DNA of 64,000 nt, from the NCBI RefSeq assembly GCF_032191835.1, contig NC_083223.1:81592001-81656000 (forward strand). The letters run 5' to 3'. How positions within the stretch are numbered: the first letter of the stretch is position 1; every line of letters starts with the position of its first letter. The translations under genes were made by a program, and so were the position numbers. The notes beneath the pieces were generated by a model that saw only the letters and a program-made list of their open reading frames with translations, had not been told where the DNA came from and searched no databases. This DNA is from Heteronotia binoei. Taxonomy: Eukaryota. Positions 514 to 58,621 of this stretch are shown one piece after another.

Positions 514-2339
514 GTGAGTTGGAGAGCGAGGCGCCTTTTGCAAACTCACATTCAGAGTCGTGTCTGCCTACAGATTAAAATCCCCGACTGTCTGTCCTTA
601 CCTTTAGTTCTTGTTTGGGGTGTGCATGTGTCAAAAATAACCACCCCCACACTAGTTACTCCCGCTCCCCTCCGCCCTATTCTGCATTCATCAACCTGGA
701 ACATCCCACATTTGCGTTAATCAGGTTGCAATGCTTCCGGCGGTCATATTTTCAATCTAGGATACGTTACAATGTGTGGGGAGGCGTTCGTGATCCTGTG
801 ATGGCCAGTGTGAATGCATACGCCGTTAGACGTCTAGTCTAAACATGAGGTATTCCTTGCATCTTTAGGGAGAAGCACATTGGATTCAGTCAGTTTAGCA
901 GTGTGTTCACACAAAGATACGTTGTAAGGCTGTTAAGTTCATTTAGGTGCCTAAAAGGAAGAGTGTCTAGCATGGAAGTTCCAGGTTTATAGGATTTAGG
1001 TTGCCCTTCGCAGTTACTGCGAATTCTGAACTCTGTGGAATTTAAACTGAGAATGTTTGGCACTTTCCTATAATTAACAGGGCTGTTTTGTGACTAGTAT
1101 TCACTAACTTACTTTGTATTCTAAGCCATTCTTACCTTCTGTGATTCAATACCAATTGAAAGAAATATGTTCACTGGTGTTCCCTCCTCCTGTTTTCTTA
1201 ATTTTTTTTTTAAATAACTGCACTAAGAAAGAAGTCTCACTGAATTTGTGTGAAGGGGGTGGGGAAAGAGTAGGGTTAACAACCCCCTGGGAGGGGGAGA
1301 AAGACCTCTAATGGGATGCTGTTTTTCTCCATGTTATGAAAAGCTACACCTGACCATTTCCACATATTGGCTGAGTCCAGATCACCAGCTCAGGGTGGCA
1401 GCATGCTGACCTGGAAGTGAGCAGGTGGAAACTGGAGTGCCCCAGAGCGTCCAGATGGCCTGTGGAGCAGGGATGGGCTGCAGGCACCCCGGGGAATGTC
1501 CAGAGCACTCATGTGTACCTTCCACCACTTTTGGCGCTTCCCGGCTGTCCAGACGGCTGAAGAGGCGCCTTGGAGCAAGTGGTACCTTTTTGAGCTGGCT
1601 CCAGGTGAGGTGGGAATGGTATGGCAGGCAGATGTGCACATTTGGATGCGCTTTTTTGGTGTGCTTGTCCCTGGGGCAGCTTAAACTGCCTGTTTGAGCC
1701 CAGTCATTTAGTCCTATTAAAGAGGCTCTAGGAAATTGGCAAAAGCTAGAGAAGAGTATAACATATGTACAGCCTGGTTGTGTTTTTGTTACAAGTTTAC
1801 CTCTTACCTCCCTCCAAATAGCAAAACAAACAGCATTCAGGGATGTCAAACTCATTTGTTATGAGGGCCGGATCTGACAGAAATGTCACTTTGTTGGCCC
1901 AGGCTATGCATGCCATAAAATGTAACACAAGGTACCAGAGATATAAACTTTATAAAGGTGATTTCAGATGTTGAATGGCAACAGCAGGTGAATGATAATA
2001 GCAGGCTTGATTGGATTAGGTGTGATATGCAGAGTGGTAGTAGGGATGGTGATGGCAGCATTGGTAACAAGACAGGAAACCTGGATCTCAGTTCCATCCA
2101 GGAGGATGCAAAGAATAAATGGGCATAAGTTTGACATTAGAAACAACAGTATTCTGACCTAAGAGTGGCAGTGCTCTTGAAAAGGGAGATTAGAAAGAGG
2201 GGCTGCTGAATTGCAGTTGATAATGATGCTCAAGACAATGCATCCTCCTGAACTGAGAGCTAGTTTTTCTGTCTCCTTACCAATGTATACCATTATCATT
2301 TGACATCTGAAATCACTCTCCAAGATATAAGGGCCAATC

Positions 2340-2705
2340 CAAGACAGAGAGAGGCAAAGAAAGGGGCAGAGAAACAAACAGATAGAGAGGGAAGGGGGCA
2401 AATGGGCAGAGAGGGGGACAGAGAGAGAGAGAGGCAAAGAAAGAGGAGCAGAGAGGCAGACAGAGAGAGCCAAAGACAGAGAGGAGCAGAGAGGGAAAGG
2501 CAAAGAGACAGGGACAGACGCAGAGAGAGGGGCAGAGAAAGAGAGACAGGGGCAGAGAGGCAAACAGAGGCCAGAAGAGAGGCACAGAGAAAGGGACAGA
2601 GAGAGGGAGACAAAGGCACAGAGAAAGGGGCAGAGAGAGAGAGAGATAGGCAAAGAGACAGGGACAGACACAGAGGGCCAGAGAAAGAGAGGCAAAGAGA
2701 GAGGG
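2340..2705. repeat. GA-rich low-complexity/degenerate microsatellite
   Basis: Degenerate GAGAGGCA/GAGACA/AAAGGGGCA units; produces the spurious ER-rich and SL-rich ORFs in the track. Confidence 0.9.
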
Positions 2706-3190
2706 TGTCACGTTCTCAGGGTGCAGGCAGGCAGGAGTCCAAAGCCAGTCCAAGGTCAAAGTCCAGGATGTCAAGCAGGAGCCAAGTCACCAATGCAGAA
2801 TCAGAAGTCAATGTCCAAAAGCCAAAAGGTCAAGGAAATTAAGCAGGTCAGGATCAGGAAGGAGCATGTATGCAAGCCAGAGAACAGAGTTTTTGCTTCC
2901 ACAAGGTTACCAGGAGTCTCAATCAGCCTGCTCCCTGGGTGGCAGTGACTCTGCTAGAACTAAGGGCTGAGAGATCTGAAGCATCGGCGTGCCTCATGTC
3001 TTCACTCTGAAAGTTCTTTCTGGAGCCTGCTTCAAACTCTTGAGATGGGAGGAGGAGAGCTTGGAGGAGATTGATCATCAACAGCTGACACTGGTGCCTG
3101 GAGAGTGATTGATGGGCCAGCTGCTGTTTGTTCAGCTGAGGAACTGGCTGGCAACTCTTCCAGGTCTGTTAACCTTTCCAGCTCCTCCTC
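2706..3190. mobile_element. Solo LTR, truncated at one end, inside the GA-rich tract
   Basis: Starts TGTCACGTTCTCAGG. Homologous in inverted orientation to the complete solo LTR at 31711-32191; lacks the last ~15 nt. Confidence 0.8.
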
Positions 3191-3365
3191 AAAGAGACGG
3201 GGCAGAGAGGCAGAGAAAGGGGACAAGGAGAGAGAGGCAGAAAGAGAGAGAGGCCCAGAGAAAGGGGCAGAGAGGCACAGAGAAAGGAGAGGGAAGGGGC
3301 TAGAGGCACAGGGAGAGAGAGAAAGGCAAAGAAATAAGGGAAAAGAAAGGGGCAGAGGGGGAGAG
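3191..3365. repeat. Continuation of the GA-rich low-complexity tract
   Basis: Same degenerate units as 2340-2705, resuming directly after the LTR. Confidence 0.85.
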
Positions 3366-3985
3366 AGGCTTATCTTTGTATCTCTCCCACGCAAAGCAGC
3401 CATGGAACTCTCCCTGTACCTGTGTGAGAGAGAGCAAGGGAGGAAAGAGGCAGGAAATAGGAACAGGAAACAGAGCCATGGAAGGAGCTGAGGGGAAAGT
3501 AAGGTAAGGTGCAGCTGCAGCTGCATCTCTGGAAAGGAGGCAGGAGAAGGGGGTTGCTTGGGGAGATGGATTTGACACCTCTACAGGCTGTATTGGGCCT
3601 GTGGGCCAGACATTTGACATTCCTGTTCTACATTAATTTTCCTTATTTAAACATCAGTTCACCGTCTTGAGTTGAGGGTGGGTGGCTATGTGGGTGAAAC
3701 TTGCAAAGGAATAATACAGGAATAATACATATTCTTTCTATGATTGCACAAAACATATGACTCTTCCTTCTTCAGACCAGGTATTTGATATTTCCCTGAA
3801 AAATTACCTCCAATATGTTCACATTCATTTATATCCAGTTGTTTTCTTAATTTCACTGGTTGTTCACTTTCCACTTTCACATTGTCATTATATATCTATA
3901 TAAATATTTCCTTTGTACAACATTATTTCCAACAACGCCCTAAAGTATACCCCAATTTAATTTAAATGTTTTACACAGCAAGAGA

Positions 3986-13209: not shown

Positions 13210-13783
13210 GTAATTCATTTAACAAGCTTATTTCATATTCGTAAAGTTGGGGGCGGGGAGTTTAAAGTAGCTGACAATGGGTTGGATCTGCTGGTGAAAA
13301 TGTATTGTGTGTGTATGTGTCCTTAGACTATCAAACTAACTATATCAGGGATGGCAAACATGCAGCCCGGGGGCCAGCTTCCAGGTGGGACCTGGGAATC
13401 CTCCAGAATTACAGCTCATACCGAGACGACAGAGATCAGCTCCCCTGGAGAAAATGAATGTTCTGGAGGATGAACTCTCTGGCATTGTACCCCACTGAGG
13501 ATTTGAATAAAAGGATCTAAGGTTCAAATCCAACATGCCTGCTATTGAGCAGTCCCAGTTCTCAGACAATCTAGTGATCAAAGTTTCCTGACCATGCACT
13601 GGCTTCTGTGCCTTCAGAAGCTTTACAGTTTCCCCCAGTTTCCCCCTGTCCATTGAGTTCTTCTGTGTTTAATATTTGAATTTCATCCATAAATAAAACA
13701 GGAAAAGAAGACTCAATTGGCTTTTAAAAATCACCAGTAATGGAAATTAGGATAAAAGTCATTGTGTGGTCTTTCCTCTCCAG

Positions 13784-14219
13784 GCATAATATGGAACAAT
13801 TACGACGGGCTGGAAAAATTGCTAATGAAATCTATCAGAAGAACCTGGAACAATTAGCCTGGGAGAAAAAACATGAAATGGAAATTGCCTTTGCTATTTC
13901 CCAAAGAGAATACCAGGAAGAAACAGACAAGCTCCTCAAAGCAGCAGACAATGATCGAGAGGCTCAGCTAGAACTGGTGGTGACTAGGGTGAATGAGAAA
14001 AACTCCGAGATCTCGTCTCTCAGCCAGAAACTGGACTTTATAACAAAATGGAAAGACAGCTTGGAAGCTGAAATATTAGAAACAAGAGAAGCGTTTCAGA
14101 AGTACATTGACATCACATTCCCTCAACTGGCCCCAGGGCAAGCAAATTTTATCTTGCCATTCAGGATTTCAACAGCATTCACAGATGGCCACGTAGACAT
14201 TGACATTCCAGGTCAATGA
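13784..14219 (+). CDS. C6orf163: C6orf163 homolog exon 5 (last)
   Basis: HNMEQLRRAGKIANE...FQKYIDITFPQLAPGQANFILPFR...DIPGQ*. Acceptor CTCTCCAG. Confidence 0.9.
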
Positions 14220-16061: not shown

Positions 16062-16196
16062 CAGGGGTGGCCAATGGTAGCTCTCCAGATTTTTTTGCCT
16101 ACAACTCCCATCAGCCCCAGCCATTGGCCATGCTAGCTGAGGCTGATGGGAGTTGTAGGCAAAAAACATCTGGAGAGCTACCGTTGGCCACCCCTG
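16062..16196. mobile_element. Palindromic hAT-type MITE
   Basis: TIRs CAGGGGTGGCCAA/TTGGCCACCCCTG, near-complete hairpin, perfect 8-bp TSD GGCTAGAG (16054-16061 and 16197-16204). Confidence 0.92.
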
Positions 16197-18715: not shown

Positions 18716-20062
18716 ATGGCCATATTAGATCAGCCACTGCATCATCCAGCAAACTGAAAGTCAAGCTTAGTGCTACAAACCAGCATAGTAGGGCCACACA
18801 ATTCAGTGATGTAAACAGTGGGCATTATTAGATCACCCATTCCATCATCCAGCAAACTGGAAGTCAAGCTGAGCAGCCCCTCACTGTGCCACAAGCCAGC
18901 ATGATAGGGCCACACCGTTCAGTGATGCAAACAGTGGACATTATTATATCACCCACTTCAGGGCAGACCAAACTGTGGCTCAGGCGCCACATGCAGCACC
19001 TTCACACATATTGTGTGGCTCCCAGAGGTTGAGGAACTTAATGCAGGCTTTCTCTCAAGTAAGCATACTTAGTATCAAGACCTCAGTCACCCTCCTAGGT
19101 CTGACCCATAGGTAGGTTACTATTTCTGCTGTGTGTTAAGTGGGGAAGTGGGGGAAATAGGCAGGCTTGCAAGCTCTTCTTCTGTACTGCAGAGGTCACA
19201 CAGAGACCTAGAGTGGGGAAAGAGAGTACAAGAGCTGAGGGAGCCACTGGAAGGAGGGGCAAGAAGTAAAGAGTGTGGCACAGGGTTCCTCCTTAGTTTT
19301 ATAGCTCTTGTAGGAGCTGGATGTACTAACCTTGGTGTCAAGGCAAAGAGAGATGCATAATGATGCAAATGGTGGTCAGTTATTTTTGTGGTACGTGTGT
19401 TTCCTTCTTCCACTGGTGACAAAAAATAATTCCCTAACCTTTCCCCATGCTGGTCTTATGGGGACTATTCCCAACTTTTGTTTTTGAAAGTCTCCTTCTA
19501 GTAGGCTTCCCAATCCCCAGGTCCCAGAGGGGGATCCCCCGGTTTTACAGGCTTCCCCCCTCCCCCAGCCAGCTGGCCGGAGGGGGAAGCCCTGCCCCCA
19601 CAACCATCATGCACCTCCATGAACAATTCCCATAGGGAATTATGGGGAATTGATGCGCGGGTATCAGGGGCTCTGAGGGGGCTGTTTTTTGAGATAGAGG
19701 CACCAAATCTTCAGTATAGCATCTAGTGCCTCTCCCCAAAATACCTCCCAAATTTCAAAATGATTGGACCAGGGGGTCCAATTCTATGAACCCCAAAAGA
19801 AGGTGCCCCTATCCATTATTTCCTATGGAAGGAAGGCATTTAAAAAGATGTGCAGTCCCTTTAAATGTGATGGCCAGAACTCCCTTGAAGTTCAATTATG
19901 CTTGTCACACCCTTGCTTTTGGCTCCACCCCAATGTCTCCTGGCTCCACCCCCAAAGTCTCCTGGCTCCACCCCCAAACTCCCCAGATATTTCTTGAATT
20001 GGACTTGGCAACCCTACCTTCTAGCCTGGTCATGTTGTACTTTTTAAACTGCAAATGCAATT

Positions 20063-20672
20063 TTGGGCTTTATCAACAGAAGCATAGTGTCCAGATCACA
20101 TGAAGTGATGGTATCACTTTACTCTGCTCTGGTAAGACCTCACTTGGAGTATTGTGTACAGTTTTGGGCACCACATTTTAAGAAGGATATAGACAAGCTG
20201 GAACAGGTCCAGAGGAGGGCGACAAAGATGGTGAGGGGTCTGGAGACCAAGTCCTATGAAGAAAGGTTGAAGGAGCTGGGCATGTTTAGCCTGGAGAGGA
20301 GGTGGCTTAGAGGTGATATGATCACCATTTTCAAGTACTTGAAGGGCTGTCATATAGATGATGGGGTGGAATTGTTTTCTGTGGCCCCAGAAGGTAGGAC
20401 TAGAACCATTGGGTTGAAATTAAATCAAAAGAGTTTCCGGCTCAACATTAGGACAAACTTCCTGACCGTTAGAACAGTTCCTCAGTGAAACAGGCTTCCT
20501 CAGGAGGTGGTGGGCTTTCCTTCCTTGGAAGTTTTTAAACAAGAGGCTATATGGCCACCTGACAGCAATGAGGATCCTGTGAATTTAGGGGGCAGTATTT
20601 GTGAATTTCCTGCATTGTGCAGGGGCTTGGACTAGATGACCCTAGAGGTCCCTTCCAACTCTATGATTCTAT
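20063..20672 (+). mobile_element. CR1 LINE 3' fragment
   Basis: [42 protein letters not shown] (CR1 ORF2 C-terminus); 3' end TTCCAACTCTATGATTCTATG. Confidence 0.95.
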
Positions 20673-21639
20673 GTTGTCAACTGCATACTTATGTATTTTA
20701 TCTTTCTGGGCAAAGAAAGTATTAAGAGTTTTAAGAAAAACATGTGTAATATTTGTTCATGTCTTGTAGCTCTCAAACAGCCACCATTTACTCTATGTGG
20801 CTCTTATGTTAAGTAAGTTTGGCCACTCCTGCTCTATAATAAAAACACTGTGGGGTGGTCACTGGCTGAAGGATGTGCATCATCTCTTGGCCCATCAACT
20901 GCCACTCAAGGTCTGTTTCATTCCATTGGCTGAGGATTGAGGCACTGCTTTGCAGAAGAGAGAAAGAAAGTCTTCCGTAGATTTGCTGACGGAGGGGGGA
21001 GGGACTGCCACAGAAAGCGTTCCCTCAATTGACGGAGGGAGGAGGAGGGAAACAGCTACAGAAAGCCTTCCTACAATGGGCTGAGGGCTCCTTCCCTTCC
21101 TCCTTTGGGGAACCAAACAGCCAGAAAGACACAGCCAAAAAAATGGCATCCCTCCCCTGCAGAACAATGTTTTTTTTTATTCTAGATTGTGATGGAACGG
21201 CCCTGGTTTGCCTACCAGATCCCGTTCCCCTTTTTGGAGGGAGCTATTTCTCCTCCGGCCACTTGGGCTCACTGCCACCACTTGCTCAGTCTAGGGGTTT
21301 GGATTGAGAGGAACAGGACTCCCAATCCCCCTCTCCAGCTCTGAGGCCAGGCCTCAAGGTCCTCTGCCACCCTGTACTTGGGTATCACAGAGACCTAGGG
21401 TTCCCAAGTCCAACCCCAGAAATATCTGGGGACTTTGGGGGTGGAGCCAGGAGACTTTGGGGGTGGAGCCAGGAGACACTGGGGTGGAGCTAGGGGGGAG
21501 GGGGGGAAACGGCCCTTAATTTGCGTATTAACCTTTTATGTTACCAGTTCTCAACGCCCGTGGGATCCGAGGCAACTTTCAGCAAGCCCTTTTCCCCTAA
21601 AGCAGCGCTGCAGCTTCAAAAACCCGCCCCAAAGCCCTC

Positions 21640-21899
21640 TTTCACTTTCCCTCCAGCCCTGAAGAACTACAACTCCCAACAGCCCGCACGTCGAAAGCGC
21701 CCATAGGAAAAAGTAGGTGTTCCTTCCCTGCGCTTCCTGCCCGGGCAAATCTCTTTTTGCTAGTTCGCGCCCTGGTTGGAACTTTGGAGTTTCTTTCGCT
21801 TAGCGGGCGATCTCTTGCTGGAAAGCCTTTCCCAAAGGAGGGAAGGAACGGCTGCCTCCCGGTGTGAATGCAAGTGGGATTTCTCTTTTGGGCCGGGAA
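21640..21899 (+). promoter_or_regulatory. CpG-island promoter-like region upstream of the UBZ4 frame
   Basis: CpG-rich from about 21.55 to 22.45 kb. ACTACAACTCCCA at 21666-21678 matches the ZNF143/THAP11-associated ACTACAnnTCCCA promoter motif. GC box CCCGCCCC near 21623. Confidence 0.6.
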
Positions 21900-22541
21900 A
21901 TGGAAGGGGCGGCGGCTTGCAAAGACCCCCTCGTGAGTTGCCCCGTTTGTTCCTGCGTGCTCCCGGCCCCGAGCATTAACTTGCATCTGGACAGATGTTT
22001 GCAGCGGAAAGGGGGCGGCGAGAGAAGTGGGGGAAACAGCGGCTGTCCGACGGGCCCGCAGTAGCCCTGCAAGAAGAAAATGCGCCTTTCCGCGTCCCTG
22101 GAGGGCAGCAACTGAGAGGACGAGCCGGTCAAGAGTCTCAGCCCCCCGCCGCTGTTTTCCCTCTTCCAGAAGGGCAGAGGCTTCGGAGCAAGAGCGCCTC
22201 CTGCTGCTGCTGCCGTCTCTCCAGCCCGGGCCCAGAGGGAAGAGAAGCCGTCAGGGGAGGAGGAGCCTGGCATCAGCCCTAATGCCCAGGGACCTGAACT
22301 GAGCGGCGAGCCTCCCCGGCAGCCCCCGACGCCGCCAGCAGCAGCAGGAGGACGCCGCTTCTCCCCCCGCTTCCGTTTTTTGGGGGGGCGGGGGAAGAGG
22401 CTCGGAAACCTGGCGTCCCCCGCTAGAGCGGGAGGATTGGGACCCCTACAGAGACCACAGCACTTCTTCGGGGAACCCCTGGAGGATTGGCACCTTATCC
22501 AACTACATGCCTTCCCCCTTTCCTCGGGGCCCCCTTCATAA
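21900..22541 (+). pseudogene. Disrupted UBZ4 zinc-finger frame resembling the WRNIP1 N-terminus
   Basis: ATG 21900: MEGAAACKDPLVSCPVCSCVLPAPSINLHLDRCL (CPVC-x11-HLDRC). In-frame stops TAG 22062 and TGA 22113; the frame then stays open to TAA 22539-22541. No AAA+ ATPase exons recognised downstream. Confidence 0.7.
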
Positions 22542-22970
22542 AGCATCGTGGTCTAAAGCAGTTGGGGATCTATGTGGTACAAAGTCTGACTGCCAGCATT
22601 CAAAACAGTAAAAATATTTAATTAGAAGAGAAAAAGAAAAGAAAAAAACAAAAGCAGTTGCATGTAAAAGTTTAGCACAGCACCCGAACAGCAACCAGAA
22701 GGACAAATAAAAGGTGGATTTAAACGCATCCTGCCGTCCCTGGTCTAAACTTGCCCTGCCTTGTGGATGACTTCCTCGTTCTGACTGCCTGGAGTCCATT
22801 CCTCCTCTCCCTCAGGAGAAGGCCTCTCCCACAGTCAGGAGCCCACAGACTGACAACCTCTCTCCTTGAGTGCCAGTCAAGAACTGACTTTTTCCCGCCT
22901 CACTCCAATAATAAAAAAAGAACTTCCTGCCCCTCTAGGAGGCTTTCCCCCTAGAGTTGATGGTTTAACT

Positions 22971-23182
22971 CTGGAAGGGAGGAGGGAGTGAAGGGAAGGC
23001 TAGGCCACAAAGCCTGCCTTAGCAGTTTCATGTTGTCTCCCAACCAAGCACCACCATTAACTAAGATGGCGTTTCTCCACATAGATAAAGAGGGGGGGGG
23101 GGAGAGAACATGGTGTCATGTGTTTAAGATTGGATCACTGGGTAAACTGCCTTCACTTTCCCCTCAGTGCCTGTGGCTAGCC
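22971..23182 (+). repeat. About 210-bp near-identical direct repeat, copy 1
   Basis: CTGGAAGGGAGGAGGGAGTG...CCTGTGGCTAGCC, repeated at 24218-24430. Confidence 0.92.
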
Positions 23183-24217
23183 AACCAACTTGGTTCTGTC
23201 AGTGAAAGGTGGGGGGGAGGCCCTTTCAAGGCCTATTTTAGCCTTTGAGCAAAAACTCATTGGGGCCCCTCCTGTCTACAGCTGCCAGCTCCAGGTTGGA
23301 AAATTCCTGGAGATTTTGTGGTGGAGTCTGCGGAAGTCACACTTTGTAGCGGGGAGAGGCCCCGGCTAGGGATCTCCAAAGCAGTTATTTTCTCCAGGAT
23401 GGGGAGAGAGATCTGTTGTCTGGAGTTCAGCTGTGATAATAGGAGCTCTTCAGCTTCCACCTGGAGGTTTCCTACTCTAGGTCTGGCAGCACCCTCTGGG
23501 TGACTTCATGTCATCTGACTGGCATGACTTAATTAGGCCTGGTTGCTTGCTCCTGTTCAGCAGCAGTCCCACTATGACAGCCACTGTGATGTTACAGTGC
23601 TTCAGAACAGGGTCTGCCAGACCCAGATTCCTACTGTGGATGTTGACTGGGTGATTTTGGACCACCACATACTTTCATCCTAATCTACCTCACAGGGTTG
23701 TTATGTAAATCAAAAGGGGGAGAGGGAAATGATGTAGGCTGCTTTGGTCTCCGCTGCGGAGAAAGACTGTCCTTTTCCTAGGTGGAGGCTGCAGGGAAGT
23801 CGGGGGGGGGGGCAGATAAAAGTAGGTTGATGATTACAGCTGCCTTCTCAACATACCTTACTTCTCTCTATCTTTCCCTTCCCTCCCCAGCACCACCACC
23901 CCAAGCCCATGACACTCACTCACGACAAATTTCTAGCACCTGTTGTATTTCTCTCAATGGGCATTATTACCAGTTTTAAAAAATTAACTAAAACATAATA
24001 TAAACACAAAAACTAGACAGAAAGGGAGGAGGATAATGAGAGTTAGTGAGGGAATACCAGCCCCTTTAACCCTAAAAGGTCTTCACCTGCTGGCAGAAAA
24101 CAATGATCAAGGGAGACAGATGGATCAAGGCTGAGTTAGTGTGAGGTAGCTCACAGTTTTTTAGTCTCTGGCTCACAAATTTTTCTCTCAGCTCAGGAAA
24201 AATAGTCCTAGAGCAAG

Positions 24218-24430
24218 CTGGAAGGGAGGAGGGAGTGAAGGGAAAGCTAGGCCACAAAGCCTGCCTTAGCAGTTTCATGTTGTCTCCCAACCAAGCACCA
24301 CCATTAACTAAGATGGCGTTTCTCCACATAGATAAAGAGGGGGGGGGGAGAGAGAACATGGTGTCATGTGTTTAAGATTGGATCACTGGGTAAACTGCCT
24401 TCACTTTCCCCTCAGTGCCTGTGGCTAGCC
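24218..24430 (+). repeat. About 210-bp near-identical direct repeat, copy 2, within a MITE-like context
   Basis: Matches 22971-23182 apart from a few substitutions and G-run length. Flanked by GTAGCTCACA-containing MITE-like arms (about 24130-24520). Confidence 0.92.
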
Positions 24431-24559
24431 TGTGGCTATGCAGTAGCTCACAACTTTAATGCCAGTAGCTCATGAGGTAGAATTTTTTCTCAGAAGACTC
24501 CACAGCTTAGATGGAACATCGATCCTTACTCCTGTTGCCACCTATCTAGCCTCAGATGG

Positions 24560-24880
24560 AGGGGGCACCCAAAGCAGGACTTCCAAGATGACCACAATAG
24601 TTGAATGGGTTCATACAGGAGTACATGGTCCTTAAGGTATGCTGGCCTCTTCAAGTGGGTTCAGAAGCAAATCAGGAGCCGCTTCAGATGGAGCAAGACT
24701 GGAGAGATATGGTTCCCAGAGCCCACTGCAGTCAACATTCTGTGCCAACTGTTGCTTCCAGACAGTCTTTAACAGCAGCCCCAAACAGAGCATGCCACAG
24801 TAATCTAACCTAGATGTTTCTGGGTAACATGCAGGATGCACCATAGTAGCAAAATCGTTCCTGCACCAGAAGAGTCAATG
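24560..24880 (-). mobile_element. Old L2-type LINE RT C-terminal fragment
   Basis: Translation TSRLDYCGMLCLGLLLKTVWKQQLAQN resembles the L2 SRLDYCN..GLP....KLQLVQN motif. Confidence 0.7.
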
Positions 24881-25015
24881 CTAGTAAAAGGTGCCCCCAG
24901 GCTGCGAACCTTGGAAGTTATCCTCTTTGTTGTAAACTAGTTTATTGGGAAAAGATGCTACTTCATTCTTTATATCACTGTTTAGTTGGATATTTTCCTC
25001 AAGATGCAGATATGC

Positions 25016-25151
25016 CAGGGGTGGCCAACGGTAGCTCTCCAGATGTTTTTTGCCTACAACTCCCATCAGCCCCAGCCAGCATGGCCAATGGCTGGGGCTG
25101 ATGGGAGTTGTAGGCAAAACACATCTGGAGAGCTACCGCTGGCCACCCCTG
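25016..25151. mobile_element. Palindromic hAT-type MITE (same family as 16062-16196)
   Basis: TIRs CAGGGGTGGCCA/TGGCCACCCCTG; imperfect flanking duplication GATATGC/AATATGC. Confidence 0.88.
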
Positions 25152-25431
25152 AATATGCGAAGGTTGATTGTGATGATTACCCATGTGAAGGAGAGGTACC
25201 CGGCTGCACCTTTCAAGGGGCTCTTTCACTTGAGGTTCGAAGCAGTCTCCTGGACTATACAACCCTGTCTCACGAAGTGTTAACCTATCCCCAGAAATCT
25301 GCCCCCCCCCATCTTTTCTTCAACGTTTAAGTTATGTATGGTAAGTTTGTAAGTATTTGACTTGTAGACCACTATATATTAAGTCATGCCTTGTGAGAAC
25401 CTCCAACAGCATATGTTTCATATATGAACCT

Positions 25432-25773
25432 ATGAAGCTGCCTTATACTGAATCAGACCCTCGGTCCATCAAAGTCAGTATTGTCTGCTCAGACTGGCAG
25501 CGGCTCTCCAGGGTCTCAAGCTGAGGTTTTTCACACCTACTTGCCTGGACCCTTTTTAGTTGGAGATGCCAGGGATTGAACCTGGGACCTTCTGCTTACC
25601 AAGCAGATGCTCTACCACTGAGCCACCGTCCCTCCCCTGCTCTCCAGGGTCTCAAGCTGAGGTTTTTCACACCTACTTGCCTGGACCCTTTTTAGTTGGA
25701 GATGCCAGGGATTGAACCTGGGACCTTCTGCTTACCAAGCAGATGCTCTACCACTGAGCCACCGTCCCTCCCT
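25432..25773 (-). mobile_element. Squam3-type tRNA SINE with tandem duplication of its 5' half
   Basis: Reverse strand: A box TGGCTCAGTGG, B box GGTTCAATCCC, tail ATAAGGCAGCTTCATAGG. The ~135-bp head segment is present twice, nearly identical. Confidence 0.88.
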
Positions 25774-26058
25774 GTATCCCTGTTTCTCTGCCTGTATCTT
25801 CGCCTTTTCCAGAGTTAGTAGCCTCAGTAAACACACAACCACCCCATCGTCCAGCAGCAGCAAAAGCGTAAACAAGAGTAAAGTCTGGTGAGTAAAACAA
25901 CCCGTCGGAGACATTCCATAACGGCCAACGCTCCTCCTCGGTAAACCAACGCGATCAAACCCTCAGCGGGCCACGCCTCCTCAGTAGCCTCAGGTCCGCC
26001 CCTAAAGCCGCCTCCGTCCTAACCCGCCTTTAGCAGGCTCGCTTGAGTCGCGCTGACA

Positions 26059-29054: not shown

Positions 29055-29857
29055 TTGGAATTAAGATTGCTGGGAAAATCATCAACAACCTCAGATATGC
29101 AGATGATACCACTCTAATGGCAGAAAGTGAGGACCTCTTGTTGAGGGTGAAAGAGGAGAGCACAAAAGTAGGCTTGAAACTCAACATCAAAAAAACTAAG
29201 ATCATGGCATCTGGCCCCATCACACCTTGGCAAATAGAAGGGGAAGACATGGAAGTCGTGACAGACTTCACATTTCTGGGATCCAAGATCACTGCAGATG
29301 GTGACTGTAGCCATGAAATTAAAAGACGCTTGCTCCTTGGGAGCACAGCTATGGCAAACCTAGACAGTAAAATAAAAAGTAGAGACATCAACCTGCCAAC
29401 AAAAGTCCGTATAGTCAAAGCGATGGTATTCCCAGTAGTAATTTATGGCTGTGAGAGGTGGACCATAAGGAAGGCCGAGCGCAGAAGAATAGATGATTTT
29501 GAGTGCTGGAGAAGAATCTTGAGACTCCCTTGGACTGCAAAAAGATCAAATCAGTCAGTCCTAAGGGAAATCAACCCAGACTGTTCCCTGGAAGGTCAGA
29601 TGCTGAAACTGAAGCTCAAATACTTTGGCCACCAAATGAGAAGGCAGCACTCACTGGAGAAGACTCTGATGCTGGAAAAGACAGAAGGCAAAAGAAGAAG
29701 GGGACGGCAAAAGTTGAGATGGCTGGACAGCGTTACTGATGTAACAAACATGAATTTGAGCAGACTTCGGAGGATGGTGGAAGACAGGAGGGTCTGGCGT
29801 GACTTTGTCCATGGGGTCGCAAAGAGTCGGACTCGACTGTGTGACTGAACAGCAACA
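29055..29857 (+). mobile_element. BovB (RTE) LINE, 5'-truncated, young
   Basis: Open 243-aa RT C-terminus (GLKLNIKKTKIMASGPIT...HGVAKSRTRL), tail CTGAACAGCAACA, 12-bp TSD TATTTTTAGTTT (29005-29016 and 29858-29869). Confidence 0.95.
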
Positions 29858-33680: not shown

Positions 33681-34458
33681 GTAAGTACCTAAATCGGAGG
33701 CCCATATTCTGGGTACCAAATTAAGGATATGTCTACAGTATGTATTTAAGCCACTTTTGTGTAAAAGTGCTTGTTACTGATCACGGTTTTATAGAACTTT
33801 ATCTAATTTTTTTGGCAATGCATTGAAGTTGGCTTTTCCAAATGCTGCATTATTTTGTTTTCAGTCAGTGCAATACCTGTATTTGTTGAATGTCCTCCAA
33901 ATATTAGCTTTATTAAAATTCTATATTATTTAACTGTGTAATTAACCAGTCTGTTTGAACACAAATAGTTGATTTATCAGTTACATTTTTAATTTCTCCC
34001 TTCCTTCAGTACACTCAGAGGGTGTTTTACATGATTCCCCTTCTGTATTCTGTCCTCACAACAACCCTGTGAACTACGGTAGATTGAGTTCCTGGTCCAA
34101 TGGACTGCTACATGACACTGACTGTAATATGAGAGATCTGAATTAGAATATAAAAAGAACTGGGTATGCACCTAAATAATTTTGCACATATGTAAGGACT
34201 GTGTTAATTTTTTCTTCCAGCTGCAGCTCCATGTGTTATTCTAGATGCTGCTTCATAAGAGCCTATGATCTTTGGGGCTTGTTTTTCAGGCCATGAAAGG
34301 ACTGCAGAGAAAGAGATCTCTCAAAAGATTGTGTGTACATATGAAAGGCTGCAGATAGCCTTTGAATTCCAGCCCTGATTCAGAAATATGTGAGAAAATA
34401 TCTTTGACTATTTACAACTTTACTTTCTCCACATTTCCAATCAAATCTGTGTCCATAG

Positions 34459-34667
34459 TACCAGCTATTCTGAATGAAGCTATCCCAGCAGCCAGCCACC
34501 ATATAGATATAGAGCTTCAGACTTCTCAGGACTTGGCATATCGATACACAGCCATGGTTGAAACAATGCACCAGAGCCCAAATGCTGAACTAGAACTGAA
34601 ACTGACAATGTTAAAAGAAGTTCTTTACAACGTGAGACAACACGAAGCGTATCTCTGTGTCATCCTG
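34459..34667 (+). CDS. CFAP206: CFAP206 coding exon 6
   Basis: PAILNEAIPAASHHIDIELQ...LKEVLYNVRQHEAYLCVIL; donor GTAAGA. Confidence 0.93.
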
Positions 34668-35467
34668 GTAAGATTCTAACATGCTTTTCATTTTCTTTAG
34701 AAATGCCTGCATGTGCATTCAAGGTGCCTGTCGATAGTAATAACTATGTTGGGTTCCAAGAAGTGGGGAGGTTCGGCAACAGCAGTAATCTGCTTTTAAT
34801 TGAAATGTAGTATGCATTCCAGTGTACACAACTTTTTTCATGCATAACGGGGAAGACAGCATCTTTTTCTGCAGCATACAGGCACTGTACTTATACAGGT
34901 TCAGATTATGAAATGGCACACAGCTACAGATCACATGAATAATTACATACGTAAGTTCCTCAGTACTGAATGTGGAAGCTTTGGAGACTAATTTTATGAT
35001 ATGTAAAAATAAATAAATCGAGACAATGACAGGGGAGGAGTTTGCTAAGTTGTTGACTGTATCTGTTTCTTTCATTAAAACAGCCACCCACTGCTTGCCC
35101 TGCTACCCCATGATCATTGAGTCACTCCATGACTAAATAAGCTCAGTTTGACCTATTTCTCAGGCTGTAGTCCTGAATATATTTACTTGGGAATGAGCCT
35201 TACTTAATTCAGTACTGCTTACTTATGAATATGCAAGCTTTCATAACTATTTTGTGCCATTTGTAATGCAATCCTGAGTGGAGATGCTCCATTCCAAACT
35301 CACTGATTTGCTAGAGACTAGAATATAATTACATTTCACTGATAATATAGCAGTATAGTCCCCAAAGGGAGCTTTCATATAGTGTGATTTCATAAATCCA
35401 ATTGACTGCTACATTTCCCTCCCTGATATTACAGTCAATCATTGCTTTATGTGTGCTGTTTTTTCAG

Positions 35468-37291: not shown

Positions 37292-38193
37292 GTACATCAA
37301 TTTAAAAAATTGTTTGTTTTAAGAGCTTTTTTTACTGCTTCATAGTATAAAGGAAGCCACTATTGATAGGTGGAATTTCTGTATCTCACAATATGTGGAT
37401 TGGAGCTGTTACAGAGAGTATTCTGTCAAGTTTGACTTCTTGATTCTTAAGTATTATATGGTGGTGTTACTACAAATTAGTATAGTGTTTCCCCATAAAA
37501 CTTTATCCTTCAATTTGTTCCTCTTTTTAGGACTTATTACTGAAATGCTGCTTTTATAAATCTCAGAAGAAGTCTCACTAGTTGCAAGGCATGTACTGAA
37601 TTTGTATGTCAAAGTTAACAAAATTCTCTGTCCTGATCCCTTTTACATTGGCAGGAGTCCAAAGAGCTCTTTAGACCTTTGCAAGGCCTTCTGGCATCTA
37701 TTCAGTCCCAGGCACAATTCCTTCTGTTACGTTCTCCTCAATTTCTGGTGTAATTTGCGAGTGAGAATGTCAGAAGCTCTACTCTATACCCATAACTCCT
37801 CCACCATGCCATATGGCAATGCAGGAGAATCTTCAAAATTTAAATGGTACATTAGCAGCAGAGTTTAGAACTGAAGTCTCAGAGCATAAATTTGCATTTG
37901 TATATTCAAAAAAGAAAGATTATAGAGTTTTCATAGTGTGACTTTTTCTACTAATTTGCACTATGGAAGATTGGGTGTTGATGCTGAAATAACCTTGATC
38001 TCTTCCTTGGCTTATAAGAAGGGGTGGGGGGTGGGGCTTGATAATGTAGATGGAATTTCCCAAAGGGTAGACTTCAAGGTAAATGGTCTAACTAGGATAA
38101 AAAGAATGATGAGGAAATAACATAAACATGTGTGTGTCTGGGTGGAGGATATACATATGCACAACCATTGTTTTTGTTGGTTTTATTTGTTAG

Positions 38194-38387
38194 GAAATCC
38201 TGGTTTGGGAATTCTGAAACATAAGGAGAAATATTACACCTTTTGTTCCAAAGAAGCTGCATATAGTTTTGCCAAAAATCCAGATAAATATATTAAGATG
38301 ATTGGAGACAAAGCAAAGGAAAGTCCAGAACTTATTCAACTGCTTGAACTTCATCAGCAGTTTGAATCTTTGGCTCCTTATTCTCAG
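38194..38387 (+). CDS. CFAP206: CFAP206 coding exon 10
   Basis: NPGLGILKHKEKYYTFCSKEAAYSFAKNPDKY...ELIQLLELHQQFESLAPYSQ. Confidence 0.95.
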
Positions 38388-39065
38388 GTATTTATTACAT
38401 TTATTCTTTGAGGGCATTTCCATACAACAGTTTTGCCAGGCACTGTAATACCAACTGGGGAAGTGAAGTATCTCAAAGAAGTATTTCCTAGTGGAGGGAT
38501 TTTTAGTGCTATACCTGTTTTGGTAATTCTGTTGCTTACTAGTCCACTGTGGACTAGCAGCACTCCCCACAAAGACTGGCAAACACCCAGCATGGCTTAT
38601 GGTTTGATTAAGCATTCCCAGCACTCCCAAACGGTGCCGTATGGAATCCCACTAAATGAATGTTTCTAACTCTTTTTACCTCCTAATTTTATTCAGATGT
38701 CCTTGATGAGAACAAAACAAAGAAACCCTGTACACAGAAAGCATGTTTTTTTAAAAAATCCAAGTTGAGTTATCCTGACCATTATTTTCAAGCAAGTAGA
38801 CTATTATAACATGTTCTGCTAAGGGGTGCTTGAAAACAAGAAACAGCAATTTGTCCAAAATTCAACAGCTAATTATTGACTTGACATACTGCTTGGTACA
38901 TATAACACCTGTTTCAAAACATTTAAATATTTGTTTTCATGTTCAATAGAGGGTGTTGTTTTTGACCCTTAAAACCCTTCATGACCTCAGACCTTTGTAA
39001 CTGAAGGACTAGTTTTTCCCATAAGGAGAGGAAGTGAAGGCCAGTAGAGGGATGGAACTTATGAA

Positions 39066-53499: not shown

Positions 53500-56400
53500 C
53501 CAGGGTTTTGTAGGGTGTTTAGCATAGAATTGTTTAATCAGCTCTGGTACTCTTACATTTGAGCTAACTACCCATTCATCGTGGGTTACAGAAAAATGTT
53601 TTCATCTAATTAGAAAATGCAATACACCCCGTTTCAGCTTAGCATCTAAAATCTCTTTTACTTCATGGTGATTCTGTTCCCCCACCAAAATAGGCTCTGG
53701 AGCTTGGGGTCGGGGGTGCCAAGACGTGGCTCGAGGATCCCTCCGGAGTAAACTGCAATGAAAGATGGGATGTATCTTACTAAACAATTTAGGTAATTCA
53801 AGTTCTACAGTCACTTCATTGATTACACGTTTAATACGGAACGGTCCCAAGAACTTGTAGGCCAGTTTTTTAGAAGGTAGCGGTAAAGGCAAGTTTTTGG
53901 TAGACAGGAACACTATCTCCCACCTTAAAATCCCAAGTGGGCGAATGATGCTTATAACGTTTTTTGTAAGTCTCTTTGGCTAATTCCAATTTTTCCTGGA
54001 TATTACTCCAAGCCTTTCCCAGCTTTCCCCACCATTGTTAAAAGTTGAGGGTACTTCTGGTACCACTCCCCCGGTAGTTGTGGGAAGGGTTTTCCTTCGT
54101 ACCCATTCACTACCAAGAATGGGGATGATTTGGTGGAGCTATGTATGCTGTTATTGTATCCATAGTCGAAAATGGGCGTAGGTCTACCCAATTGCTGATA
54201 GTTTACAAAGCACCTCAATACTGCTCCAATAGGGCGTTCACCCTTTCCGTCTGCCCGTCAGTCTGGGGGTGATACACCGAACTTAGTCCCAGATCAATTC
54301 CAGTTAATTTGCAAAACTCCCGCCAGAAGTTGGCAACGAACTGTACGCCTTGGTCACTAATTCACCACGTGTAGAAAAAACAACTGAGCCAGTTTTTCAG
54401 CCATGGGTATTTGCGAGCAAGGAATGAAGTGGGCTTGTTTAGAGAAGGTGTCCACTACTACAAGAATTACAGTCTTCCCTTGCGAAGGGGGAAGCTCGAC
54501 AATAAAATCCATTGAGACTCCTCCCACGGCCTGGTTGCTGTTTCCAAAGGCTGTAACATCCCTGGGGGGTTCCCCCCCCTCTTCTCTTAGCCATTAGACA
54601 TATTGGGCACAATTGAACATAGTCAGAAATGTCTTTTTCATAAACGGCCACCAAAATTGCCTATTTACTAAATGAAGGGTTTTCACATAACCAAAGTGAC
54701 CCAACAATTTGCTGTCGTGACAAAATTGGAGTACTTCTTTTCGGAGGCTCTCTTGCACATAAAGTTTACTGTCTTTGTATCAGAAGTCCCCTTCACCTTT
54801 CTTTACTCCCTCAGGTATAGCATCTCCTTCCTTTTCTACCTCAACAATCAACCTCTCTCCCTCCCATTTTTCCTCTAATTTGTCTCTTTTAGCTTGTGAG
54901 CGTGTGGTTACTTCCCCACCCAGTTGACTGGGGGGAATGAGCAAATCGATCACCTCCTCCTTTTGACTATTATGCTGAGGGAGGCAAGACAGGGCATCAG
55001 CCAGAAAGTTCTTAGATCCCGGGATGTGCTTTAACTTGAAATCAAACTTGGCAAAGAATCCCACCCACTGAATCTGTTTTTCAGTCAATTTCCTACGCCC
55101 AGTGAGGGCTTCTAGGTTCTTGTGGTCAGTCCATATTTCGAAGGGGACCCTCGCCCCTTCCAACCAAGACCTTCAAGTCTTTAGGGCGAAAGTAACCACA
55201 AACGCCTCCTTGTCCCAAACAGACCAATTCCTCTGCTCTTGGGATAATTTCTTTGAGATGTAGGTGCATGGTTTTAGGGCCCCTCCCTCGTCTGGTTGCA
55301 TAAGAATTGCCCCCACAGCGACATCACTGGCATCACATTGAACTACAAAGGGTTTTAATTCATTGGGGTGAATTAATATGGGTTCACTAGTAAACAATCT
55401 TTTAAGTTTGTTGAATACGTTTTGGCAATCTGTTGTCCAATTTAACTTGGCTCCTGGCTGCTTAGCCTTGGGACCTTTCCCTTTTGTCTTGAGAAGGTCC
55501 GTTAAAGGGAGCATAGTGTGGGCGAACCCATGTATAAAATTATGATAAAAATTTGCGAACCCGATGAATGATTGGCGTTGTCTACATGTCCTTGGGGGTT
55601 CCCAATCTAGAACGGCTTGTACCTTTGCAAAGTCCATTGCTAATCCCCTCCCAGATACTCGGTAACCTAGATAGTCCAATTCCGTTTGGTGGAACTCACA
55701 CTTGGATAATTTCACATACAATTGATTTTTGTAGAGGGTCGTTAACACTTCCCTCAATAACTTCATGTGGGAGGAGAGGTCATTTGAATAAATAATTATA
55801 TTGTCCAGGTATACCACTACCCCTCAGTACAAGTGCTTTCGTAACACCTCATTGATAAAAGTTAATGAAAACTCCTGGGGCCCCCTGTAGGCCGAATGGC
55901 ATGACTAAATATTCAAATTGTCCCATCGGCATGTTAAATGCCGTTTTCCATTCATTCCCCTCCTTTATGCGCACCCGGAAGTAGGGATCTCTCAGATTCA
56001 GTTTGGTGAAAATCTTTCCCTCCGACATGGTGCTTAATAGATCCTTTATTAAGGGAAGTGGGTACGCATTTGATGTTGAAACCGCATTGATCCCCCTAAA
56101 ATCCGTACAGTCTAAGTCTTTCTTCTTTCTAAAAAGTCTTTCTTCTTTCTAAAAATTATGGGGGCGGTTTGGGGGGCCGTGGCCGGTCTTATGAATCCCC
56201 GCTTTAAGTTCTTGTCTAGGAACTTGCGCAATTCAGCTTTTTCCGCCCACCCCATGGAGTATAGTTTAGCTCGTGGAAGGCTCTGCCCTGGAATCAATTC
56301 TATTGCACAGTCAGTATCTCGGTGGGGGCGAGCACATTAGCTTCCTCTTAACTGAACACTTGTTTTAAGTCTCTATATTCATGGGGGATTGATTTCACCT

Positions 56401-56950
56401 CTTCTATGGTGAGGCATAACTTTTCATTTAAAGGTGGTGGTTCTGGTCCCCACTCCACGTTCCATTGGTGGGGCTTACACCTTCCATCTCTAAAATCTAT
56501 AATTTGATCTCCCCATTTGATACTGGGTTCACATTTTGCCAACCATCCCACTCCCAAAACAATGTCAAATGATGAAGGCGAGGTCACCATAAAAATCTCT
56601 GTATCTCAGTGGTCTTCTACTTCCATTGGCACCCCTTGGGTCTGCTCTGTACATGGCTCCCCTCTCATTACAGTCCCATCCATCTGCTTAAAATTGTATG
56701 GGGTGCAGTAGCAGACTCGTAGGGAGTCCAAGAGCTTCTACTAGTTTAGGTGTGATTATGTCTCTGGTGCACCCAGAATCTAGTAGTGCTTGGGCCTGTA
56801 TGAATCGCTTTAGATTGAGGTTCAAAAAAGTCAATGGGATGAAAAACAAAGTCCCAGTAATTCTCATCCTCAACGGCGCCGTTAGTTCCACAACCTGCTG
56901 CTCGGCACCTCTCAGTGCAGGTCGCTCTCGTTTTCTGCCGGTTCGCCTTC
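53500..56950 (-). pseudogene. Gypsy pol (PR-RT-RH-IN-chromo), disrupted
   Basis: Fragmented ORFs 56688-56963, 56348-56590, 56112-56297, 55173-55817, 54780-55163 and 53602-53913 carry the expected motifs; the RT YLDD motif reads YLDN. Confidence 0.92.
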
Positions 56951-57011
56951 CCAGAACCACCACCTTTAAATGAAAAGTTATGCCTCACCATAGAAGAGGT
57001 GAAATCAATCC

Positions 57012-58621
57012 AACTCATCTATCACGATAATCTCCTCCTCCTGGGGAGCTGCCAACGCAGCGCTGCCTTTCACTGACTCCTTCGCTCGTCCTTCTGCCTT
57101 TGGGTGCGCTGGTCTTCGGGGTAAGAGGGGGCCTCGAGGCCACTCTGGGCAGTTGGCCACCATGTGGTTAGGGTCGCCGCACCGAAAGTAACGTCGAGGG
57201 ATTGCCATTTTGGCAGTTCCCCCTGCTTGGTTGGCTTTCCGCCCATCTGGTTTTGCCCTCAGCCGAGATTCACGTCCCCCCTTACTCCCTTGCTGCTCTT
57301 GATGCTGGAGAGCCACTCTCTTCATGTTAGTCTCTACCTCACCAGCCAGCTGCACCCATCCTACCAGCATGGTAGGACGAGCCTGTTGTAGGGCTCAATC
57401 CAGAACACTCGCGTTCAGGCCTCTCTGGAACTGTTTGATCTTCATCTGCTCACTCCACCCTTGGATTTTAGCCGCATTGGCCCGGAACTCGGCCGCATAT
57501 TCTCTCACCGCTTTGGATTCTTGCTGCATGTCTCTGAGGGTGGTTAAGGCTCCAGTTTCTTGTAACGGATCCTCATACTGAGTTAGTAGGGCACATAAAA
57601 ATGCTGCCACAGTGTCTAGTTCGGGGCTCCGGGTTTCGTGCAGACTCACGTACCACCTCTTGGCCGCCCCTTTTAACTTCGATCCTAAGTAATCCACTCT
57701 GCTAAATTCATTGGGGAAAGTGTGCCCCCAGTATAACATAAAGCTATTGGCTTGTATTGAAAAATACTCTACCTCTTCGGGATCCCCGTCGAAGGTAGCA
57801 TTCAGTTCCCAACCTTTCCCATAGTCTCGTGATGGCAGTAACAACGGCTGAGATTGCAGCGGCAACTGCAGCTGTAGGGGGGGGGGTTGTGGTGGTTACC
57901 CCCCTCTGGGTGACGGCGGTTGTAGCGCCCGATCCAGTTGCTTTCTCACTTCTTGGGCCGTGAGTGCATTATTGGCTCGCATTTCTTCTCTTATGCCCTT
58001 GGCCATCTCTACTTTCATCGTGTGGAGAAAGTCCCAGGGGTCAGGATTTTGCTTTTCCTCCTTGACTGGGCCTGGGTCGGGGCATTGTTCCTCTCGCTCC
58101 TCTCGACCATCCCCGCCACTTGCCTCTGAGGTGTCCTGGTCACTGTCATACATAACATATGACATATGAAGCTGCCTTATACTGAATCAGACCCTTGGTC
58201 CATCAAAGTCAGTATTGTCTTCTCAGACTGGCAGCGCCTCTCCAGGGTCTCAAGCTGAGGTTTTTCACACCTATTTGCCTGGACCCTTTTTTGGAGATGC
58301 CAGGGATTGAACCTGGGACCTTCTGCTTCCCAAGCAGATGCTCTACCACTGAGCCACCGTCCCTCCCCTAAAGGTGGAGGGTAGCGCCAGGATCGCTTCT
58401 CTCCAAGCCGGTGCTTCATCCATTAGGCTGGTAGACCTTCTGGGATCCCAAACTTTTGGGGTTATAAAGAGTCGCTGTATGTGCAACGGAGACCCTCGCC
58501 CTGCCGCTCTCCAAGCGTTGAGTATGTGCCACGGAGTTTGTAGTTGGGCAGCGTCGGGTCCTTGATCCTCACCGAGTGGGGTTTTGGGGGCTTCTCTGTT
58601 ATCTGGTGCTCTGTCTGCCAT
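57012..58621 (-). pseudogene. Gypsy gag, disrupted
   Basis: FDGDPEEVEYF...LKGAAKRWY...VREYAAEFR...FQRGLN (retrotransposon gag) and knuckle YFRCGDPNHMVANC (first Cys lost); interrupted by a SINE. Confidence 0.88.
58163..58370 (-). mobile_element. Squam3-type SINE inserted in Gypsy gag
   Basis: A and B boxes plus TATAAGGCAGCTTCATATGTCATATG tail; matches 25432-25640 and 61793-62000. Confidence 0.92.

Follow-up and report, generated by a model that had tools for sequence, protein, structure and literature searches.

A very probable Pack-hAT carrying the promoter and exon 1 start of WRNIP1 between C6orf163 and CFAP206 in Heteronotia binoei

Between C6orf163 and CFAP206 in the gecko Heteronotia binoei lies a reading frame with a ubiquitin-binding finger of the UBZ4 type, preceded by a CpG-rich stretch and broken by stop codons. 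The window analyzed here is the whole 64-kb stretch of DNA around it. Such a frame raises the question of its origin, since an initial annotation of the letters alone had seen in it either a relocated copy of a WRNIP1 promoter and first exon or the decaying relic of an unannotated UBZ4 gene, in both cases on a promoter that looked intact.

The frame starts at ATG 21900, which is followed by MEGAAACKDPLVSCPVCSCVLPAPSINLHLDRCL and whose translation opens with MEGAAACKDPLVSCPVCSCVLPAPSINLHLDRCLQRKGGGERSGGNSGCPTGPQ. The first in-frame stop is TAG 22062-22064. Downstream of it come PCKKKMRLSASLEGSN, which places the KKKMRLS patch after the first stop, then TGA 22113, and then a Pro/Ala/Glu-rich stretch running to TAA 22539-22541. 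With both stops ignored, the frame from ATG 21900 to this TAA has 213 codons. Every feature of the frame listed in the initial annotation (the ATG, the two stops, KKKMRLS, and the 213 codons) is found at the position given there. Its main parts are the following:

21900..22064, plus strand: open remnant of 54 codons, terminated by TAG 22062, where the orthologue has CAG, a Q of QQPCKKKMRLS
21939-21998, plus strand: UBZ4 finger CPVC-x11-HLDRC, inside the 54-codon remnant
22113..22115, plus strand: second in-frame stop, TGA, aligned to CGA (R) of Gekko kuhli WRNIP1; a CpG transition

The finger, CPVCSCVLPAPSINLHLDRC, fits C-x2-C-x11-H-x3-C with HLDxC and has all four zinc ligands intact. In a phmmer search of the PDB sequences, its best matches are the UBZ of WRNIP1 (3vhs, E 1.5e-5) and that of RAD18 (E 8e-5), and these significant matches bear out the earlier reading of CxxC-x11-HLDxC as UBZ4. 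The Pfam family zf-WRNIP1_ubi scores 19 bits on the finger, under its cut-off of 26.4, and the third piece of the frame gives a chance-level Pfam match only. Judged by its sequence, the finger is a genuine UBZ4 (Rad18-type CCHC), beyond a chance match. A word-index search with the 54-residue piece, among candidates of 30-95 residues, found no match.

WRNIP1 is the Werner helicase-interacting protein 1, which is Mgs1 in yeast and RarA in bacteria. A HMMER search over 1.84 billion proteins gave 86 hits at E <= 0.001, and most of the hits listed match via UBZ fingers situated well within the protein. Among the hits retrieved, P0002, P0007, and P0017 match from or near their own residue 1 and past the finger, as does P0062 behind a 93-residue leader. 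No other hit covers the query from its residue 1. By sequence and source name, these N-terminal WRNIP1 fragments come from Sphaerodactylus townsendi, Gekko kuhli, and Varanus komodoensis ("ATPase WRNIP1, partial"), and N-terminal WRNIP1 fragments reach E 5e-12 and 2.8e-10 in this search. In the cluster of the Sphaerodactylus townsendi fragment there are also entries named "ATPase WRNIP1-like" and "Werner helicase interacting protein 1"; for the Sphaerodactylus fragment there are no encoding contigs on record. The WRNIP1 fragments share a common order, UBZ4 ... QQPCKKKMRLS ... PPPVFSLFQKGR ... PELSG ... KLEGKPLADKLRPDTL ... LILWGPPGCGK. A further word-index search, with the N-terminus of Gekko WRNIP1, found additional squamate orthologues, none more than 63% identical to the window, and did not recover the WRNIP1 of the species itself.

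For the comparison across the stops, the genomic DNA was used in blastx as it stands, both stops included. Positions 21900-22310 are colinear with residues 1-144/145 of squamate WRNIP1:

21635..22310, plus strand: WRNIP1-derived cargo, composed of promoter, 5′ UTR, and exon 1 codons 1-137 (blastn, blastx)
Gekko kuhli: blastx 63% identity, E 2e-51, the best match
Sphaerodactylus townsendi: blastx 58% identity, E 7e-46
P0097 (an unnamed Logan sequence): blastx 52% identity, E 5e-39
Varanus komodoensis: blastx 49% identity, E 1.5e-29
Thamnophis sirtalis: blastx 43% identity, E 2e-27

The blastx alignments all stop at 22307-22310, with the exception of those of P0097, which extends to 22340, and of the bird sequence P0101, which extends to 22325. 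At the DNA level, blastn aligns window positions 21635-22309 with the Gekko kuhli WRNIP1 locus (L001:3754-4431) at 69.7% identity over 723 columns (E 4e-90). This match begins at least 265 bp upstream of the ATG, and all indels in the alignment relative to Gekko are multiples of three. Where the window has its two stops, the Gekko kuhli WRNIP1 DNA has CAG (Q) and CGA (R), precisely the codons from which each stop had been supposed to be one transition away. The initial annotation was therefore right in its first alternative, a copied and relocated WRNIP1 promoter with its first exon, because the homology takes in codons 1-137 and, ahead of them, the 5′ UTR, the ZNF143-type motif, and the upstream region. 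The deposited Gekko kuhli protein at L001:4001-5121 (GCA_051903775.1), a 216-residue 'hypothetical protein' marked UNVERIFIED_CONTAM, consists of WRNIP1 exon 1 and a wrong second exon. The Sphaerodactylus and Varanus WRNIP1 entries are similarly truncated models, and the 5′ ends of squamate WRNIP1 genes are poorly annotated.

The exon 1 of Gekko runs ~190 bp beyond the end of the cargo, to GPPGCGK and then a GTGAGT donor. Neither KLEGKPLADK ... GPPGCGK (Walker A), nor an AAA+ ATPase, nor the GTGAGT donor is found in the window after 22310. The capture broke inside exon 1, and the copy is therefore without the donor site and without the ATPase domain. It fails as a WRNIP1 gene because the AAA+ ATPase with its Walker A GPPGCGK is absent and the reading frame is not open. 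By all its sequence features, the frame is a dead, broken copy of the WRNIP1 promoter and of the start of exon 1. An internal donor (GTGAGT 21932 or GTGGGG 22027) had been considered as the end of a first exon in a live spliced gene, a candidate dropped with the finding that the block is transposon cargo. GTGAGT 21932 sits within conserved L-V-S codons, and Gekko has GTGAGC at the aligned place.

The upstream part of the copy contains two features of note:

21666..21678, plus strand: ZNF143/THAP11-type motif ACTACAACTCCCA, the sole exact match in the window
21491..21634, plus strand: left junction zone, CpG-rich, with a CpG observed/expected ratio up to 0.8 from 21500

The WRNIP1 upstream region of Gekko kuhli has an identical GAAGAACTACAACTCCCAA at the aligned position. 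Hence, the ZNF143/THAP11-type site is part of the WRNIP1 promoter and was copied along. The CpG observed/expected ratio is 0.7-0.88 over 21500-22100, against 0-0.3 in the flanks, so that the motif and the CpG density remarked on upstream of the frame are both present. The high density would most readily follow from the recent copying of a CpG island, and is not in itself proof of promoter activity. The left junction zone gave no significant blastn match to either the Gekko kuhli locus or the hAT family member described below. Its MAFFT alignment with Gekko kuhli has patchy identity only (e.g., around 21552-21580), and it is probably distal WRNIP1 promoter. Elsewhere in the window, CCTACAACTCCCA, which differs from the ZNF143-type motif by one mismatch, forms palindromic pairs with a spacing of 49 bp at 16098-16159 and 25053-25114. 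These pairs belong to a very abundant repeat (contig depth ~26,000 at 25000-25199), and ZNF143-like words are therefore often repeat-borne in this genome.

The copy lies between the ends of a transposon, and a second element of the same family is found nearby:

21396-22448, plus strand: hAT-type element of 1053 bp, with TAGGG...CCCTA termini and an 8-bp target-site duplication
21388..21395, plus strand: left copy of the target-site duplication CAGAGACC, 8 bp, recurring at 22449-22456
22449..22456, plus strand: right copy of the target-site duplication CAGAGACC, 8 bp
21396..21490, plus strand: hAT-type 5′ terminus, with the inverted-repeat end TAGGGTTCCCAAGTCC and subterminal tandem units GGGGTGGAGCCAGGAGAC (21-22 bp)
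22311..22362, plus strand: filler between the cargo and the transposon 3′ end
22363..22448, plus strand: hAT-type 3′ subterminal region and inverted-repeat end ...GGATTGGGACCCCTA
20016 to 19502, minus strand (19494..20024 with its duplications): ordinary non-autonomous family member of 515 bp, with its own 8-bp duplication CTAGAAGG

Both termini can be recognized by comparison with the 515-bp family member, which adjoins at 1.4 kb and has the ends TAGGGTTGCC... and ...GGGAAGCCTA. In the self-comparison of the window, 21396-21490 is 93.7% identical over 95 bp to 20016-19922 on the opposite strand. The last 66 bp of the element align with the 3′ end of the family member at a local score of 36, a moderate match, as compared with 16.3 +/- 2.5 (maximum 28) in 500 shuffles (z ~8). 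The termini of the smaller element (TAGGGTTGCCAAGTCC ... GGGGATTGGGAAGCCTA) are of the same kind as those of the 1053-bp element. Within the latter, 13/20 positions of the terminal 20 nt match between the 5′ end TAGGGTTCCCAAGTCC and the reverse complement of the 3′ end TAGGGGTCCCAATCCT, and its short terminal inverted repeats have the YARNG-type start. RNA-contig depth is ~68,000 in the bin 21400-21599, at the 5′ terminus, whose sequence is therefore a very abundant repeat. The two independent 8-bp duplications, the TAGGG/CCCTA termini, and the 21-22-bp subterminal tandem units are together the signature expected of a non-autonomous hAT-type element, the name 'hAT' being assigned on the basis of the 8-bp duplications and the TAGGG/CCCTA ends. 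Autonomous hAT elements code for a transposase with a BED finger, a DDE, and a hAT dimerisation domain; there is no autonomous copy within the 64-kb window.

Between their termini, the two elements share no related sequence (best local score 20). The interior of the larger one is of host-gene origin, as 21635-22310 matches the 5′ region of Gekko kuhli WRNIP1 (E 4e-90) and not the interior of the family member. The filler at 22311-22362 matches neither the Gekko WRNIP1 locus nor the family member. It includes a 16-nt perfect inverted match, 22333-22348 against 22197-22212 in the cargo, which may be the footprint of a template switch or a chance match in CAG/CTG-rich sequence.

The element in turn interrupts another repeat, whose left part occupies about 21200-21387 and whose right part is given here:

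22457..22999, no strand assigned: right part of the interrupted host repeat, with a summed contig depth of 140-590 against 0-5 in unique bins

The contigs placed on 20000-25999 come from three RNA-library runs. In 3/3 runs, host-repeat contigs join 21386/21396 to 22448/22458 and skip 1061 bp, which is exactly the 1053 bp of the element and the 8 bp of one duplication copy; these empty sites are paralogous copies of the repeat and not the orthologous locus. The 213-codon frame, which had been taken as one unit, holds in its codons 1-137 (21900-22310), the only gene-derived part, but not in the remaining 76, which consist of ~50 bp of filler, the transposon 3′ end, and host repeat. The AATAAA noted near 22706 is indeed present at 22706-22711, but it lies within the interrupted host repeat, which removes it as the poly(A) signal of the gene. 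Since 22311-22448 is filler and transposon, and host repeat follows from 22449, both the last 76 codons and this AATAAA are unrelated to WRNIP1. Farther along, a 213-bp stretch occurs at 22971-23182 and again at 24218-24430, on the same strand, 1.2 kb apart, and 99% identical; the two are either very young copies of a repeat or the product of a local duplication.

Transposon termini, a target-site duplication, and a WRNIP1 cargo identify a Pack-hAT and not a native UBZ4 gene. Hence, the feature between C6orf163 and CFAP206 is, with high probability, a Pack-hAT with WRNIP1 5′ cargo. In the proposed course of events, the interior of a non-autonomous hAT-type element would have been replaced by ~680-820 bp copied from the 5′ end of the host WRNIP1. 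Of this, at least 265 bp would be promoter and 5′ UTR, with the ZNF143-type site among them, and the coding share would be the first 137 codons of exon 1, in which the UBZ4 finger and KKKMRLS lie. The capture would most likely have occurred by template switching in the repair or replication of a double-strand gap at the hAT element. Either the loaded element transposed into the site, or a plain element already resident there was filled in place; in both cases, the element now lies inside another repeat, flanked by its 8-bp target-site duplication. The copy has also gained two nonsense transitions, CAG to TAG and CGA to TGA. The capture appears to be recent, because CpGs are retained, there are no frameshifts, and the difference from the presumed parent transcripts is 2-5%. 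A LINE-mediated retrocopy was also considered and rejected, since neither end has a poly(A) or LINE tail and the copy contains promoter DNA.

A native origin would make the frame the decaying relic of an unannotated UBZ4 gene, possibly the counterpart of human LINC01590/C6orf164, which we take to lie in the C6orf163-CFAP206 interval. The place agrees with this, as does an ATG behind a CpG-rich stretch. One would not expect such a relic, however, to be bounded by transposon termini and a duplication within a repeat that has uninterrupted copies elsewhere, nor to follow WRNIP1 from promoter to codon 137 and stop abruptly inside exon 1. The papers found on C6orf164/LINC01590 are, by title and abstract, expression and marker studies. 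Since the block proves to be an insertion, with transposon ends and a duplicated target site, the suggested link of a native UBZ4 gene to this locus is without support, and this origin is extremely unlikely. The same low credence applies to an error of assembly, by which WRNIP1 5′ sequence would have been wrongly joined into the interval. The junctions do lie in very abundant repeats (depth ~68,000 at 21400-21599), where assemblers can err. Yet such a join would not yield a matching 8-bp duplication, both family termini in correct orientation, and the exact relation of 1053 + 8 bp. Moreover, the cargo differs by 2-5% from the RNA contigs and has two stops, and is therefore a diverged copy and not the misplaced parent gene.

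The neighborhood agrees with the gene order that had been described, at least on the right, where Pfam FAP206 matches at 34362-34676 and 38130-38408 (E 2e-16 and 8e-24) place CFAP206 downstream on the same strand. Pfam gives no match to the putative C6orf163 exon at 13740-14216. About 8 kb upstream of the first FAP206-domain exon, at 25.7-26.3 kb, there is another and stronger CpG island (GC 0.54-0.60, observed/expected up to 1.14), probably the native CFAP206 promoter. As this separate island is the better candidate, the CpG island of the cargo was rejected as CFAP206's own promoter. Elsewhere in the window, a run of minus-strand ORFs at 53600-57900 (e.g., 55173-55817 and 57395-57865) looks like that of an LTR-type retroelement, with gag, protease, reverse transcriptase, and integrase. 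ORFs resembling fragments of a LINE reverse transcriptase are found at 20063-20488 and 29117-29848, neither with a Pfam match, and ~1.4 kb of CT/GA-rich low-complexity sequence at 2150-3620 contains long spurious ORFs in several frames on both strands.

On another reading, the copy, dead as a WRNIP1 gene, would still carry a live promoter. If it fired, it would produce either a transcript for the 54-residue UBZ4 peptide, a putative ubiquitin-binding decoy, or a new promoter or lncRNA near CFAP206. Several features of the cargo speak for this. The conserved ZNF143-type site lies within the 265 bp or more that were copied from upstream of the ATG, the CpG observed/expected ratio is still 0.7-0.88, and, for the peptide, the four zinc ligands and HLDRC are intact. 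Tan et al. (PMC8277862) report an appreciable share of Pack-TIRs to be transcribed. RNA-library contigs also cover 21607-22310, at a low depth of about 3.5-5. Run X1 has a contig of 620 nt on 21607-22226 with 14 differences, and in run X3 there are three contig pieces, each with 6-7 differences. An X3 contig of 303 nt follows the window over 22182-22310 and departs from it exactly at the end of the WRNIP1 homology.

These contigs fit the mRNA of the parent gene better than that of the copy. They differ from the window by 2.3-4.7%, and none of those listed crosses the junction of cargo and transposon. At 95-98% likeness to the cargo, and with one departing where the WRNIP1 homology ends, they suggest an expressed parent gene. 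Both the 2-5% of differences and a departure exactly at the end of the homology point to a parental source, so that the sampled animals' real WRNIP1 mRNA, and not this copy, is the probable source of the cargo contigs. A depth of ~5 also occurs in some unique bins outside genes, and the libraries may contain DNA. Retained CpGs are expected of a young copy, and CFAP206 already has a native CpG island upstream, at 25.7-26.3 kb. An active captured promoter is accordingly improbable, if less so than the native relic or the misassembly. Were it active, working CpG-island promoters, and now and then a small ubiquitin-binding module, would be carried around the genome by a hAT family of this gecko.

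On the Pack-hAT reading, the apparent relic of an orphan UBZ4 gene is an ordinary pseudogene fragment whose origin is clear, and it should therefore be annotated neither as a gene nor as the counterpart of LINC01590. To the gene-capturing hAT elements it adds a clean case in which promoter, 5′ UTR, and coding start were captured together. If a genome-wide count confirms it, the gecko would be a good vertebrate system for studying the choice of CpG-island 5′ ends by DNA transposons, and for asking if transplanted promoters stay active.

Comparison with known systems starts with WRNIP1 itself. The copy resembles it in the UBZ4, the spacer, the basic K/R patch followed by LS, and the Pro/Ala/Glu-rich linker with PPPxFSLFQKGR, all colinear with the gecko orthologues. 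It differs in having nothing from residue ~145 on (Walker A, AAA+ ATPase), in its two premature stops, and in its position in a transposon, off the WRNIP1 locus.

Capture of gene fragments by hAT transposons is already known, and the WRNIP1 case is another example. The animal catalogue of Tan et al. (2021, Nat Commun 12:4280, PMC8277862) lists 370 Pack-TIRs in 100 genomes, with hAT the commonest carrier (208/370). The examples given there include a captured 5′ UTR, multicopy cases favor GC-rich DNA, and template switching in gap filling or replication is the proposed origin (PMC8277862). An alligator case is reported, and a text search of the paper found no mention of lizards, Anolis, or reptiles by those words (PMC8277862). 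As in the Pack-TIRs and Pack-hATs described there, the ends of a non-autonomous TIR transposon here flank a copied host-gene fragment (PMC8277862). Set against them, the present cargo is a whole CpG-island promoter with 137 WRNIP1 codons. Other superfamilies capture genes as well, and they can be told apart by their traces. MULE elements leave 9-11-bp duplications, and Helitrons have no TIRs and no duplication, whereas the element described here has an 8-bp duplication and TAGGG...CCCTA ends. What it shares with the Pack-MULEs of plants (discussed in PMC8277862) and with Helitron capture is the transposon-mediated duplication of GC-rich 5′ gene fragments.
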